64,000 nt of DNA from Podarcis muralis. Its lineage: Eukaryota. Position 1 is the first letter of the stretch. The number at the start of each line of letters is the position of its first letter. Positions 16,330-26,559 of this stretch are shown piece after piece. The notes beneath the pieces are model-generated. The model had not been told where the DNA came from, did not search any database, and saw only the letters and a program-made list of their open reading frames with translations. Location: the NCBI RefSeq assembly GCF_964188315.1, contig NC_135664.1:77624001-77688000 (forward strand), written 5' to 3'. Made by a program: the position numbers and the translations under genes.

Positions 16330-17720
16330 CACAGAAGCAAGCCAGAGGGCGGGGCGGGGGCGGGAACTGGATCTGACCGGGGCTGGATCCTCAGCTCCCG
16401 CATCCTTGGCAGCCCCTCTGACAGGAGGGCCAGGACCCATTTCATCTTTGCCAGCTGCTTCCCGGTGACCGCGAGCCCTGCTTTGGGGGGGGGGGTCAGC
16501 TGCGCCCCCTTTCCCTTGCGCGATCTCCCCACCGGTCAGCTAATCCAAAGCGCCAGCAAGACTCCCACCCCGCCCCACCCCGCCATCCCTTGGAAACATG
16601 GCCTCAGGTGTGGGGCAGGCCGGCAGGTGTGCTTTGCGGAGACGGGGACCAGTCCAAAGGGCTCCTCGCTCCGGAAGGGGCAGGCCTGCCTGCGCAGAGG
16701 GGCTACCGGCGAGGATGGGGGGGGGGTCTCTTGGGGAAGAAATGAGCCGCGCAGACCCCCCGGCCAGGAGTCCCTCGTTTGCGGCTTGTCTCTTCGGACG
16801 GGGCGACCTAATCCCTGGCCAGCCCTGGAGTCCAGGCGCCCTCTAGTGGGCGGCGCGGGCCCTGCAGGCAGGAACCCCGAAGGCGCCCTCGACGGGGGAT
16901 TCTCCCCGGTTTCTCCGACTCCCCCCGTCCCCGCGGCGGGGAGGGGGTCGTCAGCGCAGAGAGACCCAGGGCGGCCCGTGGGAGCTTGGGGGAGGTGTGA
17001 CCCCGGACGGCCATCCCGTTCTCCCGGGCGGCCCCAGCCAGTCAGTGGCGGTCTTGGATGCCCCGCCCCGTCGCGGAAGGAGCCTCCAGAGGCTTGGCCA
17101 GCCCGGGCAGCGCCCAGGGGCCGGGAGGCTGGTATTTAAGCCGCGTCGGACGGCGCGGGGAGGCAGTTTGCTACTGCTGCTGCTGCGGGTCATATATCGT
17201 GGAGCCGTCCAGGAGAGCCAGCGCGCCGTCCAGCTCACCGTCGAGGATTCCTGGGAAACTCTCGCCGCTCCGAAGGACCGGGCAGCCCAGCTCCACCAGC
17301 CAGAATTGCACCCGACGGCGGCACTGGAGCCAAGCGGCTCCCGCGCGAGGTAGCGCCCCCCACCGGGTCCTCGCACCCTGGAGCCCTCGGCGCCGCCATG
17401 AAGCGCCCGCTGCGCCGGGAGCCCGCTTGCATCAGCCGCTGTCGCCTCCTCCTCCTCTTCCCGCTCCTCGCGCTGCTCCTTCACCTGCCGGGAGCCGAGT
17501 CCGCCTCGCCCGCCCCATCGGGGCGCATCTGGCCGCTGTCGCCCAGGTGAGTCCCCGTCGGAGAACTCTCCTCCTGCTCCGTCCCCTCCAGGGAGGGCGA
17601 AGGTCGGCAGCCGTGGGGTGGGGGTGGGGTGGGTGTTTTGGAGCCTGAAATGGGGCCGAGAGGTGACCGGAGCCCTTCCCCGACGGAGGCCGCCTCAAAG
17701 CGGAGCGGAGAGGCCCGCCT
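16330..17720 (+). promoter_or_regulatory. ADM2: ADM2 CpG-island promoter with Sp1/GC-box cluster (about 16346-16365) and TATA-like TATTTAA (17133-17139)
   Basis: CpG-rich; TATTTAAG about 260 nt upstream of the ATG; gggcggggcgggggcggg. Confidence 0.7.
17398..17546 (+). CDS. ADM2: ADM2 coding exon 1 (signal peptide)
   Basis: MKRPLRREPACISRCRLLLLFPLLALLLHLPGAESASPAPSGRIWPLSP+AG; GTGAGT donor. Confidence 0.9.
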
Positions 17721-18999
17721 GCTCACCCCCATTTCATGTCCCCTGGCAGAGAGAGTGGTGGGGCGTGTGGGGAGCCGCTGAGCTGTCAACTTTTCCCTTT
17801 TCTTGCGAGGAATCCTATTCGGAATAAGGGAATTTCCCTTAAGAAAAGGGAATGCCCCTCCCTCGCCCCTGCCAGCTGGAATCCCTCTTTGCCCTTCGGG
17901 AGGGGCGTGCAGTCCAGTGGAAGGGAGTTCCAGGGACCGGCCCGAGAACCGGCTTCTTTCTCTGGCAGAGGAGCGACCCCCGCCATGGCCGAACGTGTCC
18001 GGGAGCCGCCGCGGTGGGGCAGGGAGTTGGGGGGGGGGGGCTCCAGGAGTTACTCTTGGGAGAATTGGGTCGCGCCTGTTGGGATCAGCCTAAAGAAAGA
18101 CCCTTTGCTCGCCCCCAGCCCTTCCATTCCCCACAGCAGCCCGGAGCTCTCGCCTAAAATAGGGGTGGTGGTCGGGATACCCCCAAATATGCTCAGATGG
18201 GAAGGAAGGAATCCCCTTCCCCTGGATTTTGGGGGCTGCGCTTTTGGCCTGGGCTGGAATGGGGGTGCCAGCCTGCCACCCGCTTCAGCCCTGCGAGGAT
18301 CTCCTTTCAAGCTCTGCGACAGCAGACAGAGGCAAACCTCCGCTAGGCGGTTGTAACAGCCCTGAGACCTGCGGGTTTGGGGCGGCATACAAATTTAATA
18401 AATCATCATCTCCAGAAAACACGCAAGGCGCAGATGAGATAGAAGCCATGGTAAAGCAGCAGTAACCATCCTAGCACCCTGGAACTGTGGAGTTGGAAGG
18501 GTCCCGAGGGTCATCTAGTCCAACCCCTCGCAATGCAGGAATCCTGCCCACAGCCATCCCTAGGTGGGCTTGAACCACTAACCTCCTGGTTAACAGCCAG
18601 ACGCACTGGCCCATTGCGCCATGATGAAGACGTCCTCTCTGTCATCCCAGCAGGAGGATGTGTCCCCTTTAGCAAGGAATTGAACCAGTGTAGAGCTCCC
18701 ATTTGTGAAAATGTTTGGCACATACAAGCAGGCACATGCACACACTTGCCTAGGGGTTCCGTTGACAATGAAGCAGTATATAAATGTTGTTAAATAAATT
18801 CTATATACAGTTGAATATGTTGCCTGGGAAAATGCCTGCCTGCTAAGAGAGAGGGCAGCTTAAGGAAGCAAGCCAGGCTATACACTGATTGGGATACCTC
18901 TCTGTGAAAAGGGGGTGGGTGCGCAAACGAGACTTATGCAGGGAGGGGGCACATGGCAGAGAAAATGGGTTTGGGCGAGCTGGGCCTTAACGCAAGTAC

Positions 19000-19047
<48 letters not shown>

Positions 19048-20775
19048 GATCCCTGCTGTGAGTGTCTGGGTCCTCAGAAGTTGCTGACTGCCCAGCTGGC
19101 AACAGTGTGGGGCATGTGAGTGTGGCATGACTTGGCACCTTTGGGTGCTTCAACTCCAAGCACCTGGGCAGTCAGAGCGTTTCTGTCAGCCAGGCCGGGA
19201 GCAGCTGAGTGGGTGAGGGTTCAGGCACTCAGGGCTGGATGTCTGGCTCGTCACCTGACCATCGGATGGCTGGGGGGAAGTGAACCTGAACCGGAGTTGC
19301 CCCTGAGCCAAGGCAGCGGAAGGGCAGGCAGGGGTTCAGCGGGCATCGCTTGGAGCAGGAGGGTTGGGCACGCTGCTGGCTGCGCTGTGGACTAGAGCTG
19401 TTGGCTCTCCCGCTGGGCAGTGGGCAGGCTGCCAGTCCCTGCAGAGAAGGATGGAGGGTTTTCGGCCAAGGACTGGCGGGTCTCCCCAAGGCTCTTCTGC
19501 TGCTGTTGAAAATACAGCTCCAGGAAGTGTGTTGACACAGTGGGGGGTGGGGAGACCCTGCAGACCTTTGACCACTGCAGCCCACGAGTTCTGCTCAGAG
19601 GATGGGGGTAGGGGGCAAGGCATTGGGGGGGGCTGGCTTCTGTGTCTTGCTCCCTCCTCTGTCTGTGAGCCAGGGGATGGGGGCATCCAGCTGTTTGCTT
19701 GGGACCACAGCTGGGCAGTATGCCAGCATCTTCTCTGGTCCCTCTAGCCCCTGCTCCAGTGCTAAAGGGGGTGAGCAGCAGGTGGAAGCCCAGGGGATGA
19801 ATGGGAGCCCAGCTGAACCATCGCTCCCCTCAGCCATGCAGCACTTGGGAGCCTGGAGATGGACAAGCAAGCAAGGCTTCCATGAAGGCGGGTGGAACAG
19901 CTCCCTAAGCCAGAGAAGGCCGTGGTCCCCACAAGCGCCTCCTGCTGTGTTTACCCAGCATTCAGCTGTGATGCAACTGTTGTCTTTGGTTTCGGCCCTC
20001 AATGGCAGAGCAGAATGGGGAATGAATTACAGCCCCACCTGCCCTTCCTCCAGGGAGACCCACATCGTCCCAACAGTCCTGTGAAACAGAACAGCCTAAG
20101 GGAGAGAGACTGGTTCAGGGTCAGCACAGCCAAGCAGAGATTGGAACTGGAGTCTTCCCAGCTGAAAGACAAACTTTTATTGAGGCACCTACTGCGAAGT
20201 GCAAATTATGATTTTTGGCTTAGGTTTGTGGCTCCCCTACAGGCTTCCAGCTGTTGCATCAGCTCCTGAGGCATTTTTCCTATTCAAGCTAATGGCAAGA
20301 GATGCTGCTTTGCCCGCACCCCATCCAGGGATGGCAGGAAATGCTCATTTGTGGCAGATGGAATCTGCCCAGAGTACCAGGACAGTTTCCATCAAGGCTG
20401 ATTCAAGGCTAAGCAACAAGGAAGTACTGGGCAGAGGGCAGATGAGAGAGTGGGAACTGCAATGAGCAAAGCAGGGGGACATCTCAGGCAGCGGAGACAT
20501 TTCACACCTGGGAGGATGGTGTCAGGAGGGTTAACGCCCAGGATGAGTGGAAGGGCTGCAGAGGACGGGGAGCTGGCAGACAGGCTTGTTTGAGCAGAGT
20601 ATTTATATCACCCCACTTTGCCACACAGGATGGCTTACAATATAGGTGTTGTTTTTAAATCCAAAACAATTACCAAAGTCATGGTCAGCAGTTTAAAAAT
20701 CATATTTGGTTGTGACTAAAACAAGGAATGAATCACCTCTCTCTCTCTCCCTCCCTCCCTCCCTCCCTCCCTCCC

Positions 20776-20816
<41 letters not shown>

Positions 20817-21848
20817 GGAAGGTATGGGTGTTTATGTCTGGAGGTGGGCAAATGTCTGTCTGCAAAAGGGAAGAGGGGAGTGTCTCCAAAAAATACTGGT
20901 CAATACAAGATGAGTAAGAGGTCAGTCTGTGGCCATCTAGAAAATCTTTCTTCTTCGGCGATCCCTCGTAGCCGTGTAAGATGGTCTTCCATAAAAACAG
21001 TTTTAACAATGAGTCTGTAAGTGACTGTGGAGACTAATTCTGGATCCACGCTTCCTTCCACAGTGGGGACATTGGTTTCCGGGCGGGATGACTTGGAGCC
21101 AGAATGGGTTGATCAACTGTATGGCTTGCAAGACCAACCTTCTCTCCCGTCATTTTGTCTAGAGTGACTAGTCTGGTTGCTTTATCTTCAATGAACATAG
21201 TATATCTTGATTTCAGCAAAACATTTGACAAAGTGTCTCCCACGTTATCTTGTTGGCAAGTAGGTAAAATAGAGGCTGGACAAAGACTCCTTTGAGGTGG
21301 ATCTAAAACTGGCTGGGCAGCTGTGCCCACTGAGTGCCCACGATGAGTGGCTCTGTGTCGGCCGGCTGGGAGGTCTTGAGCTGTCCTGCTCAGCATTCCT
21401 TTCGATTACTTGGAGTCTGGAGGATGCTGATGCCAAGCTGGGAAGGGGATGAGGACCTCAGAAAACAAGAGTACAGGTTCAAAAGATCTTGACAGGCTGG
21501 AAAACTGGGCTGAAACCAACAGAATGAAAACCTACAGTGATAAATGTAGAGTCCTGCATGTAGGTGCAAAGTAGGGATGGCTCTTGGGCTCTCAAATTTC
21601 AGTGGTTCAACAATAAAATTTGGCGCCCCCTGTGGCGCCAACACCCAGTGGGGCAGAACCAGTTGCGCTACCCTAAAACCGCCTCTGTGCAAAGAATCAG
21701 AGTCACAAGTATAGGATGGGGAAACCAAGTGTGCAGAAACGATCTCGGGGTCTTAGTGGCTCCCAAACCAAAGAGAAGCCGGTTGTGTGATGTGCCCGCT
21801 CAAAAAGCTGATGCAATCCTAGGCTGCATTTGCAGAAGCAAACATCTC

Positions 21849-21932
<84 letters not shown>

Positions 21933-24900
21933 CACAGGCCAGAGGACCAAGGCCTCTGCAGAGCCAGGCAGTCATCACACCCAGCTGCAGCTGTGCCAGG
22001 CGCCCTCGCTTGTGGAGGGGAGAGGCAGCTCCTCTTGTCCTGTTACCTGAAACTGTGGTGACGGTTGGAGAGAGGCTTTTGAACCTGGCCTGTGTGTGGG
22101 CTACGGGCCTTTGATGCAGCTGGCCTCCGCTCCCTCCTTGCCGCCTGCCTGCCAAGCGTACGTGTCCTGTGGCAGGTACAGCTCCCTTGCCTTGCCTGCG
22201 CTCCTCCCCGCCTCCCGCCCTGCTCCTTCCCTCTGGCCATCTCCCAGTCTCTCCCGCCTCCTCCCCTCCTCCAGACCAGTTCCTCTTCCCTGGTGGAAGG
22301 AAGCTGACATCCTTCTCCATGCCCCAACCTGACACATGCTCTCTCCTCTCCTCATTCATTCTCCCCCCCCCCCCGCCGCCCCATCCCGCTTCTCAAATAG
22401 AAAAGGTGGATCAGCAGGTTGCGTCAGGGCTAGGCCACACATAGTTTCTCTTGTGGTCTGGAAGAGACGGTTGCCGCCACCCAGAGAGACGTGCTGGCCG
22501 TGATGCCTCTCCAGGCAGCCAAGGCCGAGGGGCCTGGCCTCACGGGGGACCAAACAGAGGCCGTCCAAGGTCCTCAAGGAGGGACTGCTGGGGTTAGAGG
22601 GAGCTTCTGGGCTCAGCTCACGAGTCTCTTCACGACTGGTGCAGAGCATGGCCCTCAAGAGATGACCCCCCCTTGCTGTGTCCTGCCACAGAGGTGGGGG
22701 GCTGCCCTTCCTGGAACCACCGTCTTCCTATGAGGATGGCCAGCCAGGCAGGTCTGCATCTGCTCAGTTACAAAGGCCAAGAGCTGAGCTTTTAACAAGC
22801 ATCTGTCAAAAGCAAAAGCCGAGGTTGAAGTCTACCAGTTTCAAGCAATGAAATGTTGCTTCATTTAAATGTGTCAAATATTCCTTCTGCCCCAGCCGAC
22901 TTTTTGCCTCATTGATCTGAGAAGGGCAATAGTTCAGGGACAGAGCACCCGCTCCACATGCAGGGCCCAGGTCCAATCCGCAATGGCTGCGCATGGACCT
23001 TGCCTGAAACCCTGGAGAGCTGCTGCCAGTCAGTGCGGACAGTACTGAACCAGATGGAGCAGGGCTCTGACTTGGAATTCGGTGGCTTCCAAGGTTCCCA
23101 GCAGGACGTGGGCAAGGGGACCTGTCCCTGGACTGGGTGGGAACTCATCTCCCCACCCAAAAGGGGGCTCTGCCCCTGCTTCTCCTCTGATCTCATTCAG
23201 GATCTGGGTCCCCCACAGAGAGGACTGGGGGGGGGGGAGCCCTTTAAAAAGCAGCTTCCTATTACAGTAATTAATTCTGAGAGAAAACCCAAATACAGAA
23301 CATTAAGTTTTTTAACGGGAGTGAGTGGAAGAGCCGCAGTTGTCTCTGAGAATGGCAGCCATCTCCAATGGCCTGGGAGGCTGGCATGTCTATTGGCCAT
23401 AAAAGGACACAGCAGGGAGAAGGGGACACAAGTCACAGCTATACAAGTGTACACATGTGCGCGCATGCACACACACACAGCAAGGGTGCCCATCGTCCCA
23501 CACTCTGCACAAGCTCCACACACAAAGACCAAGTCATATTTTCTGACTCCCAGTACCAGACCTCACACGATTTTCTCCAAGAAAGATACCCAAGACTGTT
23601 GTCCTATGCCTGGGTTCTTGAGAGCGAATCACACTGAGCAAAGTGGACTTTAGGAGGGAACAGTCTGGTTTTCTTGTCTATGACATTGGAGGCAAAAGGG
23701 TCTTTCTCAGGCAGCCCATTCTCAAAAAAGCGCATGTCCCAAACTGCCTTATTCCTGCTGCTGTTAGGATGGAGGGGGATCCCCAGGCAGAGCCCTGAAA
23801 CTCAGTGGGGTTGTGGAGATGGAGATTCCTTTGGGCTATAGGAAAATTCGCCTGGGGTGCGAGGCTTGCCCTTCTCTGACCCTGTCTCACGTGTCCAGTG
23901 CCAACCTGATGCACCTGGCGGGAGGCTCTGGCAGTGGGGTCTTCCTTGCTGACCTTCAGGGCTAGCCAGGTCCTGGAGACGCCCATGTGCACCTCCAGGT
24001 GAGCACCTGACAAGCTGTTTAGGGGTTGGAAGGCAACCATGAGTACTTTGAATTGGGCCTGGCACCACAGTGGCAACCCTCAGGTTTCTCTCCCCGAGAG
24101 GCTGCGCTGTACACCCACCCAAATATGCTGACCCAGATCTGCAGCCTCCCCCACAGAGCCCTCTTCTTGAGTCAGGCTGGGCCTTTGTCTGTGCTTTTTC
24201 TGCTCTGACAGGCCTCACTCTCACCCTGCCTGGACCATCCCATGGAGAGGCAGACTCACCTGTGACGAGCACTCCTCCTCCTCCATGAGAAAGAATTTTG
24301 TGCGCAGTTTCTGGGCAAGGGCAGCCAAGCCGTTTCAAGCAACATTCCATGAGCCAGCCCTGCGAGGGCACATGGCGGCTCTGGGCCTGGGCAGTGCAGA
24401 AGTAGGTGTGGCCCCTGCACCCCCAGGGACCACATAGGCGGGGGGGGGGAGGCGGCTCTGATCCCCCTATAAACAGGCTGTGGCTGCTCCTGCAAGTATT
24501 TGTGCTCCTGCTCCAACATGCCTCTTTCCCTCCTGCTGCCAGCGGAGGGCGAGGGCTCATGGCACCTCTTCCATCCTCTCGTTGCAGGAAGCCCTGGGCT
24601 AGAAGCCACCCACCAGCCTGGCTGCGGAAGAGGCTGACGACAGAAGAGCTTTTGGACAAGACGGCCAGAATGTGGCCGGCCTGGAAGCCTCCCGTGGCGA
24701 CGCCAGGAAGCTGGCTCCACCTCTCCGTCCTCCCCAGGCGCAGACTGGATCCCCAGCAGCCTGGCAGGCCCCCCCAGCACCGGCTCCCATGGACTCCAGC
24801 CCCCCGTCCAAAGCGCCAGGCAGCCCCCCGCCTGCACCGCGCGCAGCTGATGCGTGTCGGCTGTGCCCTGGGCACCTGCCAAGTGCAGAACCTGAGCCAT

Positions 24901-24981
24901 CGGCTCTGGCTTCTGAAGGGCCAGTTGGGACTTCAGGAATCCGCCCCCATGAACCCCAGCAGCCCCCACAGCTATGGGTGA
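17398..24981 (+). CDS. ADM2: Adrenomedullin-2/intermedin precursor, join(17398..17546,24588..24981), 180 aa
   Basis: Kozak gccgccATG and hydrophobic signal peptide; donor CAG|GTGAGT at 17546; acceptor ttgcag| at 24587 with matching phase 2. C-terminus RVGCALGTCQVQNLSHRLWLLKGQLGLQESAPMNPSSPHSYG* is the diagnostic AM2 mature peptide with amidation Gly. Confidence 0.96.
18480..18631 (-). mobile_element. tRNA-Asn-headed SINE with CR1-derived tail
   Basis: Minus strand tggcgcaat...ggctgttaacc..aggtt.gtggttcaagcccacc is a tRNA-Asn(GTT) head fused directly to a CR1 3' tail. Confidence 0.8.
19002..19044. repeat. (GA)n microsatellite
   Basis: Read directly from the sequence. Confidence 0.95.
20737..20813. 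repeat. (CT)n(CCCT)n(GT)n compound microsatellite
   Basis: Read directly from the sequence. Confidence 0.95.
21090..21840 (+). mobile_element. Degenerate CR1 ORF2 fragment in the ADM2 intron, ending at a (CT)n(CA)n microsatellite
   Basis: YLDFSKTFDKV, ENWAETNRMK, RNDLGVLV and KADAILGCI motifs. Confidence 0.75.
21845..21930. repeat. (CT)n(CA)n compound microsatellite
   Basis: Read directly from the sequence. Confidence 0.95.
23660..24075 (-). mobile_element. L2 fragment
   Basis: AQFKVLMVAFQPLN motif. Confidence 0.6.
24588..24981 (+). CDS. ADM2: ADM2 coding exon 2 (prosegment and mature peptide)
   Basis: Contains the CALGTC ring, C-terminal SPHSYG and a TGA stop at 24979-24981. Confidence 0.96.
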
Positions 24982-26229: not shown

Positions 26230-26559
26230 ACCCTATATATAGAAAAGAGCAAAGCAGTGATATTTGAGGGAGCAGGCTAGCAGGCGGGGCCCAGGACTTG
26301 CATCATAGGAGCTGACAAAACACAAAACACTGTTGCTGTATGTAAGTTTGATTTCATTTGTTTTTTATCTTATATTTTGGAAATGTGCACCCGGTTTCTC
26401 CACCCCTTTTGGGGGGGGGGGGTCCCAGGAGAGGGGGGCCCTAAGCTAGAGCCTGTTGAGCTTAGACGTAACCCCCCCCCCGGGAGCAGGCTCTGGGCGG
26501 GGGGCAAGGGGGAGAACTTTCTCTGGAGATCCCCTCCCGGAAGGGCCCCCCATCTGCTC

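Follow-up and report, generated by a model that had tools for sequence, protein, structure and literature searches.

The window analysed here is a 64,000-nucleotide stretch of the Podarcis muralis genome (contig NC_135664.1, 77,624,001 to 77,688,000 of the forward strand; positions below are counted from its first base), and the gene that carries the candidate site is ADM2, on the + strand. The main features of the gene are as follows.

17133..17139, + strand: TATTTAA, a TATA-like box about 260 nt 5' of the ATG
17398..17546, + strand: first coding exon of ADM2 (49 codons plus 2 nt, ATG at 17398-17400), ending at the donor CAG/GTGAGT
17426..17434, + strand CTTGCATCA, - strand TGATGCAAG: CARE-type (C/EBP-ATF composite) site, by direct reading
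17427-17434: 8-mer core TTGCATCA, by a scan of the window for the 8-mer
24588..24981, + strand: last coding exon of ADM2, with pro-region and mature intermedin/ADM2 (...RVGCALGTCQVQNLSHRLW...SPHSYG) and the stop codon TGA

The first coding exon holds the signal peptide and the beginning of the pro-region. Its translation matches the 50 N-terminal residues of the NCBI entry 'protein ADM2 [Podarcis muralis]' (P0001, 180 aa), and the translation of the last exon (24589-24978) is 100% identical to the same protein. The splice from 17546 to 24588, across an intron of 7 kb, was based on the NCBI protein model and on the phase match: the 17546 donor and the last-exon acceptor have compatible phases, and 49 + 1 + 130 residues give the annotated 180 aa. 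One RNA contig stops at 17547, which is only suggestive of the first-exon donor. When the last exon was searched for homologues, 550 were obtained at E<=0.001, with ADM2 of about 120 vertebrates among the matches listed. The product has a signal peptide and a C-terminal ring peptide with the hallmark ...RVGC.LGTCQVQNL...SPHSYG, which places it in the ADM2/intermedin family (calcitonin/CGRP/adrenomedullin, PF00214). The last ADM2 exon also overlaps with a 357-aa open frame of the - strand (23802-24875), rich in Arg, Gly and Pro, that most likely arises from the G+C-rich sequence as such.

Stranded RNA-seq covered 17106-17462 at low depth on the strand of the gene, corresponding to low basal ADM2 expression in the lizard. 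Since the RNA coverage begins in the 17106-17207 bins, the CARE-type site lies roughly 260-320 nt 3' of the transcription start, which is itself an approximate position given the low RNA depth. The site is located inside an island of 70-75% G+C. In the 5'UTR, four differences from the assembly (17252 T>C, 17257 A>C, 17264 G>T and 17278 C>A) were present in all reads of two RNA-seq runs and are presumably population polymorphisms. Within intron 1, a stretch of about 70 nt (17781-17852) showed very high RNA depth on both strands in all runs; its reads had many loose ends running into unrelated sequence and an opposite-strand joint 17801/17840. This stretch looks like a short interspersed or inverted repeat common to many transcripts and not like ADM2 expression. 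The same intron also contains (GA)n/(CA)n microsatellites at 18990-19040, 20740-20800 and 21850-21930, which appear in open reading frame translations as SLSLSL and THTHTH.

The first-pass annotation had placed CTTGCATCA at 17426-17434, within signal-peptide codons 10-13 of ADM2, and the sequence reads exactly so. Codons 10-13 are GCT, TGC, ATC and AGC (A-C-I-S), lying inside the translated codons of the 180-aa product, and the site takes bases 2-3 of codon 10 (Ala), all of codons 11-12 (Cys, Ile) and base 1 of codon 13 (Ser). The consensus of the CARE has been given as 5'-TGATGxAAx-3' (PMC5175342), and the minus strand of the lizard site, TGATGCAAG, fits it. The number of copies of the 8-mer TTGCATCA in the window is only mildly high and unremarkable alone (7 against 3.0 expected, and 7 was reached in 5 of 100 shuffles). 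A chance origin of the site was rejected on orthology, since 10 of 11 species share the core at orthologous codons, and not on this count.

It has been reported that human ADM2 carries an ATF4 site, GTTGCATCA, in its coding region 30 bp downstream of the ATG; a review that describes the work of Kovaleva 2016 presents the site as ATF4-binding and the gene as tightly regulated by ATF4 (PMC6145237). The human ATF4-responsive site about 30 bp after the start codon, as cited in the first-pass annotation, was thus verified in print. Overexpression of ATF4 raised ADM2 mRNA 11-fold (PMC5805170), and ADM2 is among the ATF4-regulated genes in three human data sets (supplement, PMC10637723). The functional CARE of human CARS is GTTGCATCA, a 9-mer identical to the human ADM2 site, and CAREs at or downstream of the start site act via ATF4 recruitment and elongation (PMC5175342). 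Primate ADM2 proteins start MARIPTAALGCIS (P0106), with C-I-S as residues 11-13; this agrees with the claim that the tripeptide has the same residue numbers in human and lizard. A mutagenesis result on the human site is reportedly contained in Kovaleva et al. 2016 (Gene 590:177).

To follow the site across vertebrates, ADM2 genomic DNA from 10 additional species was compared with that of Podarcis. The core TTGCATCA is identical, and in the same orientation, at the orthologous codons of 10 of the 11 species, the exception being the alligator, which is treated separately below. For the ten species, the codon before Cys (codon -1), the Cys codon, the Ile codon and the next codon are given here in that order.

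Podarcis: GCT, TGC, ATC, AGC
Zootoca: GCT, TGC, ATC, AGC
Rhineura: AGT, TGC, ATC, AGC
Pituophis (snake): AGT, TGC, ATC, AGC
Platysternon (turtle): GGT, TGC, ATC, AGC
Lagopus (grouse): GGT, TGC, ATC, ACC
Platypus: GGT, TGC, ATC, AGC
Pig: GGT, TGC, ATC, AGC
Gar: TGT, TGC, ATC, AGC
Coregonus (whitefish): TAT, TGC, ATC, AGC

There is zero synonymous variation in NNT TGC ATC A among these 6 sauropsids, 2 mammals and 2 ray-finned fishes. The codon alignment that had been proposed as a check for suppressed synonymous change at TGC ATC A was therefore run with the result of no change in 10 species. In an alignment reaching 150 nt upstream and 120 nt downstream, TTGCATCA was the sole invariant block. 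Although the amino acid preceding Cys is not fixed (A/S/G/C/Y), its codon ends in T in 10 of 10 species, and this invariant T runs against the local composition: elsewhere in exon 1, T has a frequency of 0-0.21 among third positions (Podarcis 0.04, pig 0.03, platypus 0.00). The codon directly after the motif is freely variable (CGC/CGT/CTG/CTC/CTA).

The flanking N-termini of lizard and human ADM2 had been taken as unrelated. This view was not upheld, because turtle MKSLPPVALGCIS and snake MKRQSPAGQSCIS bridge the two, and the core begins at a distance of 29 nt from the A of the ATG in 8 of 10 species (deviating distances are 32 in Zootoca, 26 in Rhineura and 17 in grouse). The shared codon position is thus a matter of plain orthology and not of coincidence. 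The same annotation had dated the site to at least the amniote ancestor. The site is indeed at least that old, but this age was understated, for gar and whitefish also carry it, which takes it back to at least the bony-vertebrate ancestor. A profile search of representatives found no cartilaginous-fish ADM2 among the clusters looked up, so the bony-vertebrate ancestor is the limit of dating. A forward primer used for chicken ADM2 cloning, ATGAGAGCGGCGCTGGGGTTGCATCA, contains GTTGCATCA in the segment ...CTGGGGTTGCATCA (PMC12434238). Read literally, this primer has one G more than grouse CTGGGTTGC and would lead to a frameshift; the extra G may be genuine or an error of typing, and chicken was left out of the species count for this reason.

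As a control, 56 C-terminal hormone codons of the same ten species were used, among which 27 columns have an invariant amino acid with a degenerate code. None of these 27 keeps one codon throughout the ten species. Counted by parsimony on the species tree, each control third position needs at least 2.37 changes on average, and a single one of the 27 shows no change, whereas all 3 synonymous positions within the motif have stayed the same (Fisher p about 0.001; Poisson 8e-4), a comparison made on small samples from ten species' DNA. The longest invariant nucleotide run is 4 nt in the hormone codons and 8 nt in the signal-peptide codons. Synonymous-site constraint at the motif thus exceeds the background of the gene itself, as expected of a duon, and the earlier proposal that C-I-S is kept for its DNA and not for the protein was backed by this invariance set against the 27 varying hormone codons.

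The shape of the constraint is also informative. The 8 core bases are fixed in 10 species, as a CARE would have them, and the terminal x of TGATGxAAx, which is the second base of codon -1, is free (C/G/A on the + strand); no other base bordering the core varies in the sampled DNA. The internal x falls on base 2 of the Cys codon. Taken together, the constraint appears to follow the CARE consensus with its degenerate positions included, the freedom of the internal x being seen from protein variants only.

These variants were collected from 127 ADM2 proteins (120 homologues and 7 cluster members), 93 of which have a recognisable motif at this position. The tripeptide is C-I-S in 78, C-I-T in 5, C-V-S in 6, Y-I-S in 2, C-L-S in 1 and R-V-S in 1, and it is preceded by G, Y, C, A, S, R or N, each of which has a codon with T in third position. 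In an alignment of 12 species, only M1, C11, I12, L14 and L24 are invariant outside the hormone region. The change from S to T in galliforms (ACC in grouse) retains the final A of the motif. Among frogs and newts, Y-I-S was seen in newts (P0028/P0033) and Bombina (P0212), and F-I-S in Hyla (P0194); the change of C to Y or F would need just one substitution, in the degenerate internal x, and the predicted frog and newt codons are T-TAC/TTC-ATC-A. The change from I to V occurs in rabbit, hare, a jay, some fishes and a caecilian, and the predicted site is then TTGCGTCA, which we take to be a CRE/C-EBP hybrid also bound by C/EBP-ATF4 dimers.

The coding constraint is strong in most lineages but not universal. 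In Alligator mississippiensis, exon 1 (L010:2001-2045) has the codons CCC, CGC, GTC and AGC, giving CCGCGTCA; three A/T-to-G/C changes, in an exon very rich in G+C, have removed the site. No replacement TTGCATCA was found anywhere in the 7.6 kb of the alligator ADM2 locus. This loss, together with the CVS, CLS, YIS, FIS or RVS found in about 10% of the N-termini examined, indicates that the element is dispensable in some lineages. In fishes, C-L-S or C-V-S was seen in a salmonid ADM2 copy (P0144) and in some others. The ADM2-like proteins P0156, P0158, P0159, P0166, P0168, P0174 and P0175 have the N-terminus M.A..P.W.CLLLG... without the C-I-S tripeptide. This group is probably the teleost b-paralogue, in which case the element would have been retained in one duplicate and lost from the other.

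Further perfect copies of TTGCATCA are present in and just downstream of the lizard gene.

19969-19976: perfect TTGCATCA
20254..20261, + strand: second perfect TTGCATCA of the gene, in intron 1 (L001:5510, L002:6567)
21809-21816: perfect TTGCATCA
26298-26305: perfect TTGCATCA

The copy at 20254 has alignable flanks in Zootoca and Rhineura, that is, it is kept across lacertoid squamates, and it may serve as an auxiliary CARE. The copies at 19969, 21809 and 26298 are not conserved even in Zootoca, where mismatches or gaps fall at the motif. An intronic 'cluster' of sites was therefore rejected, as 3 of the 4 extra copies are unconserved in Zootoca and the copies are mostly lineage-specific. In the turtle, grouse, platypus, pig and gar loci, no TTGCATCA was found beyond the exonic copy.

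What keeps these codons could in principle be the protein, if Cys-Ile-Ser served the signal peptide in targeting, cleavage or membrane insertion and the match to a CARE had arisen incidentally. Most ADM2 N-termini indeed show little or no variation in C-I-S(L) (78 CIS and 5 CIT of 93), and in non-squamates (turtle, grouse, platypus, pig, gar and whitefish) it lies inside the hydrophobic core, within the most hydrophobic 9-mer of the signal peptide (hydropathy about +2). However, in six squamates (Podarcis, Zootoca, Rhineura, Pituophis, Pogona and Salvator) the hydrophobic core is a new poly-Leu within residues 17-32, and C-I-S is retained outside it, in an Arg-rich, net hydrophilic stretch with a mean hydropathy of -0.4 to -1.4. 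The protein context has thus changed in squamates and the nucleotides have not, which, together with the synonymous data, disfavours a protein-level reason for the tripeptide. Such a reason also leaves unexplained why the synonymous positions are invariant (TGC and not TGT, ATC and not ATT or ATA) and why the third-base T stays fixed where the preceding amino acid changes, and the hormone, the most protein-constrained part, shows free synonymous change. We therefore regard retention for the protein as highly improbable.

Constraint at the nucleotide level alone cannot separate DNA from RNA, and the 8 conserved nucleotides could act in the transcript, as an RNA-binding-protein site or as a translation-initiation or localisation signal about 30 nt past the AUG. 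The prevailing 29-nt distance to the ATG would also suit a translation-linked signal, but it is equally explained by the absence of indels in a short N-terminus, and it differs in Zootoca, Rhineura and grouse. We know of no RNA-binding-protein motif in UUGCAUCA, which counts against a role in RNA. The constraint pattern moreover tracks the CARE consensus with its degenerate positions, and an ATF4-dependent function has been reported for the human site (PMC6145237), so that an RNA signal is, in our estimate, very unlikely. A different possibility is that the element is a real bZIP site which in the lizard serves mostly other dimers (C/EBP-beta homodimers, CHOP-C/EBP, ATF3, ATF5 or PAR-bZIP factors) and drives expression that is tissue-specific or hormonal, and not the integrated stress response. 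CHOP and other partners also bind CAREs (PMC5175342). Against this, the half-sites TTGC and ATCA form the signature of a C/EBP-ATF heterodimer, the orthologous human site is described as ATF4-binding in a gene under tight ATF4 control (PMC6145237), and several human data sets name ADM2 as a target of ATF4. The use of other dimers was thus considered unlikely.

Compared with these alternatives, the reading as an ATF4 site accounts for the codons, the orientation and the ATG distance, all of which are as in the experimentally studied human site, with intermediate taxa connecting the two. We therefore consider it quite probable that the site is the lizard orthologue of the human ATF4-responsive CARE/AARE of ADM2, held by selection at the nucleotide level since at least the bony-vertebrate ancestor. 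Apparently, it is the gene switch and not the protein that has fixed these codons for more than 400 million years. In the proposed mechanism, stress kinases would phosphorylate eIF2-alpha, upon which ATF4 would be translated; ATF4 with a C/EBP-family partner would then bind TGATGCAAG, which lies some 30 nt past the ATG and a few hundred nt downstream of the promoter, and its binding would increase ADM2 transcription under the integrated stress response, in a way comparable to the promoter-proximal or downstream CAREs of other targets. Since the bases of the site are also translated, selection for the DNA motif would fix NNT-TGC-ATC-A and hence Cys-Ile-(Ser/Thr) in a signal peptide that otherwise evolves freely. 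ATF4 binding and stress induction in the lizard and in other non-mammals are inferred; for ADM2, a response to amino-acid limitation, ER stress or mitochondrial stress has been reported in human only. No literature linking non-mammalian adm2 (including fish adm2a) to ATF4 or stress was found, nor any on exonic ATF4 'duon' sites.

The human site has been published already, and the lizard site adds to it a putative orthologue and what appears to be a clean 'duon' example. The depth of conservation to the ancestor of ray-finned fish and tetrapods, the synonymous constraint and the squamate shift were not found in the literature searched, a search that did not include the text of Kovaleva 2016. 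Beyond the orthology itself, a broader reading seems to us somewhat favoured, namely that the exonic CARE is among the oldest and cleanest dual-use codon blocks, that it has dictated three residues of the signal peptide since before the split of ray-finned fish and tetrapods, that it survived the relocation of the squamate hydrophobic core, and that the protein changes which occurred (C to Y/F, S to T) are only those that keep TGATGxAAx.

ADM2/intermedin has been studied in mammals as a stress-induced 'mitokine'. If the present reading is true, the link of ADM2 to the integrated stress response would be ancestral to bony vertebrates and not a mammalian feature, and the lineages in which the motif is broken (alligator, the probable teleost b-paralogue, some caecilians) would be natural knock-outs of the stress control of ADM2. 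Natural experiments are at hand in the remodelling of the squamate signal peptide, the alligator loss and the variants at degenerate positions. 'Synonymous' variants in ADM2 codons 10-13 would not necessarily be neutral. The evolutionary constraint on duons has been disputed, and the ADM2 site would offer one named case, accessible to experiment, for the idea that exonic transcription-factor sites shape both codons and protein.

Among known systems, the closest is the human ADM2 site, which shares with the lizard site the gene, the core TTGCATCA, the orientation, the codons Cys11-Ile12-Ser13 and the distance of about 30 nt from the ATG. The two differ in the base 5' of the core, which is G in the human site (GTTGCATCA as quoted) and C in lacertids (Ala GCT). 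Function has been tested in human cells only, and the signal peptide around the site has been remodelled in squamates. The lizard site also fits the same TGATGxAAx as the canonical CARE/AARE of ASNS, DDIT3/CHOP, ATF3, TRIB3, CARS and SARS, and by lying near and 3' of the transcription start it resembles the class described as 'CARE downstream of the TSS' (PMC5175342). Whereas canonical CAREs are located in promoters, 5'UTRs or introns, the ADM2 site is in translated codons and so also dictates amino acids. In this it is like the duons or exonic enhancers, in which a transcription-factor site in coding sequence constrains codons and residues (PMC4745165; PMC13216554). Unlike genome-wide duons, the ADM2 case, known here from sequence, is a single site with a named factor and an explicit synonymous constraint that would span more than 400 million years. 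The duons of Stergachis et al. 2013 are said to have been defined genome-wide from footprints.
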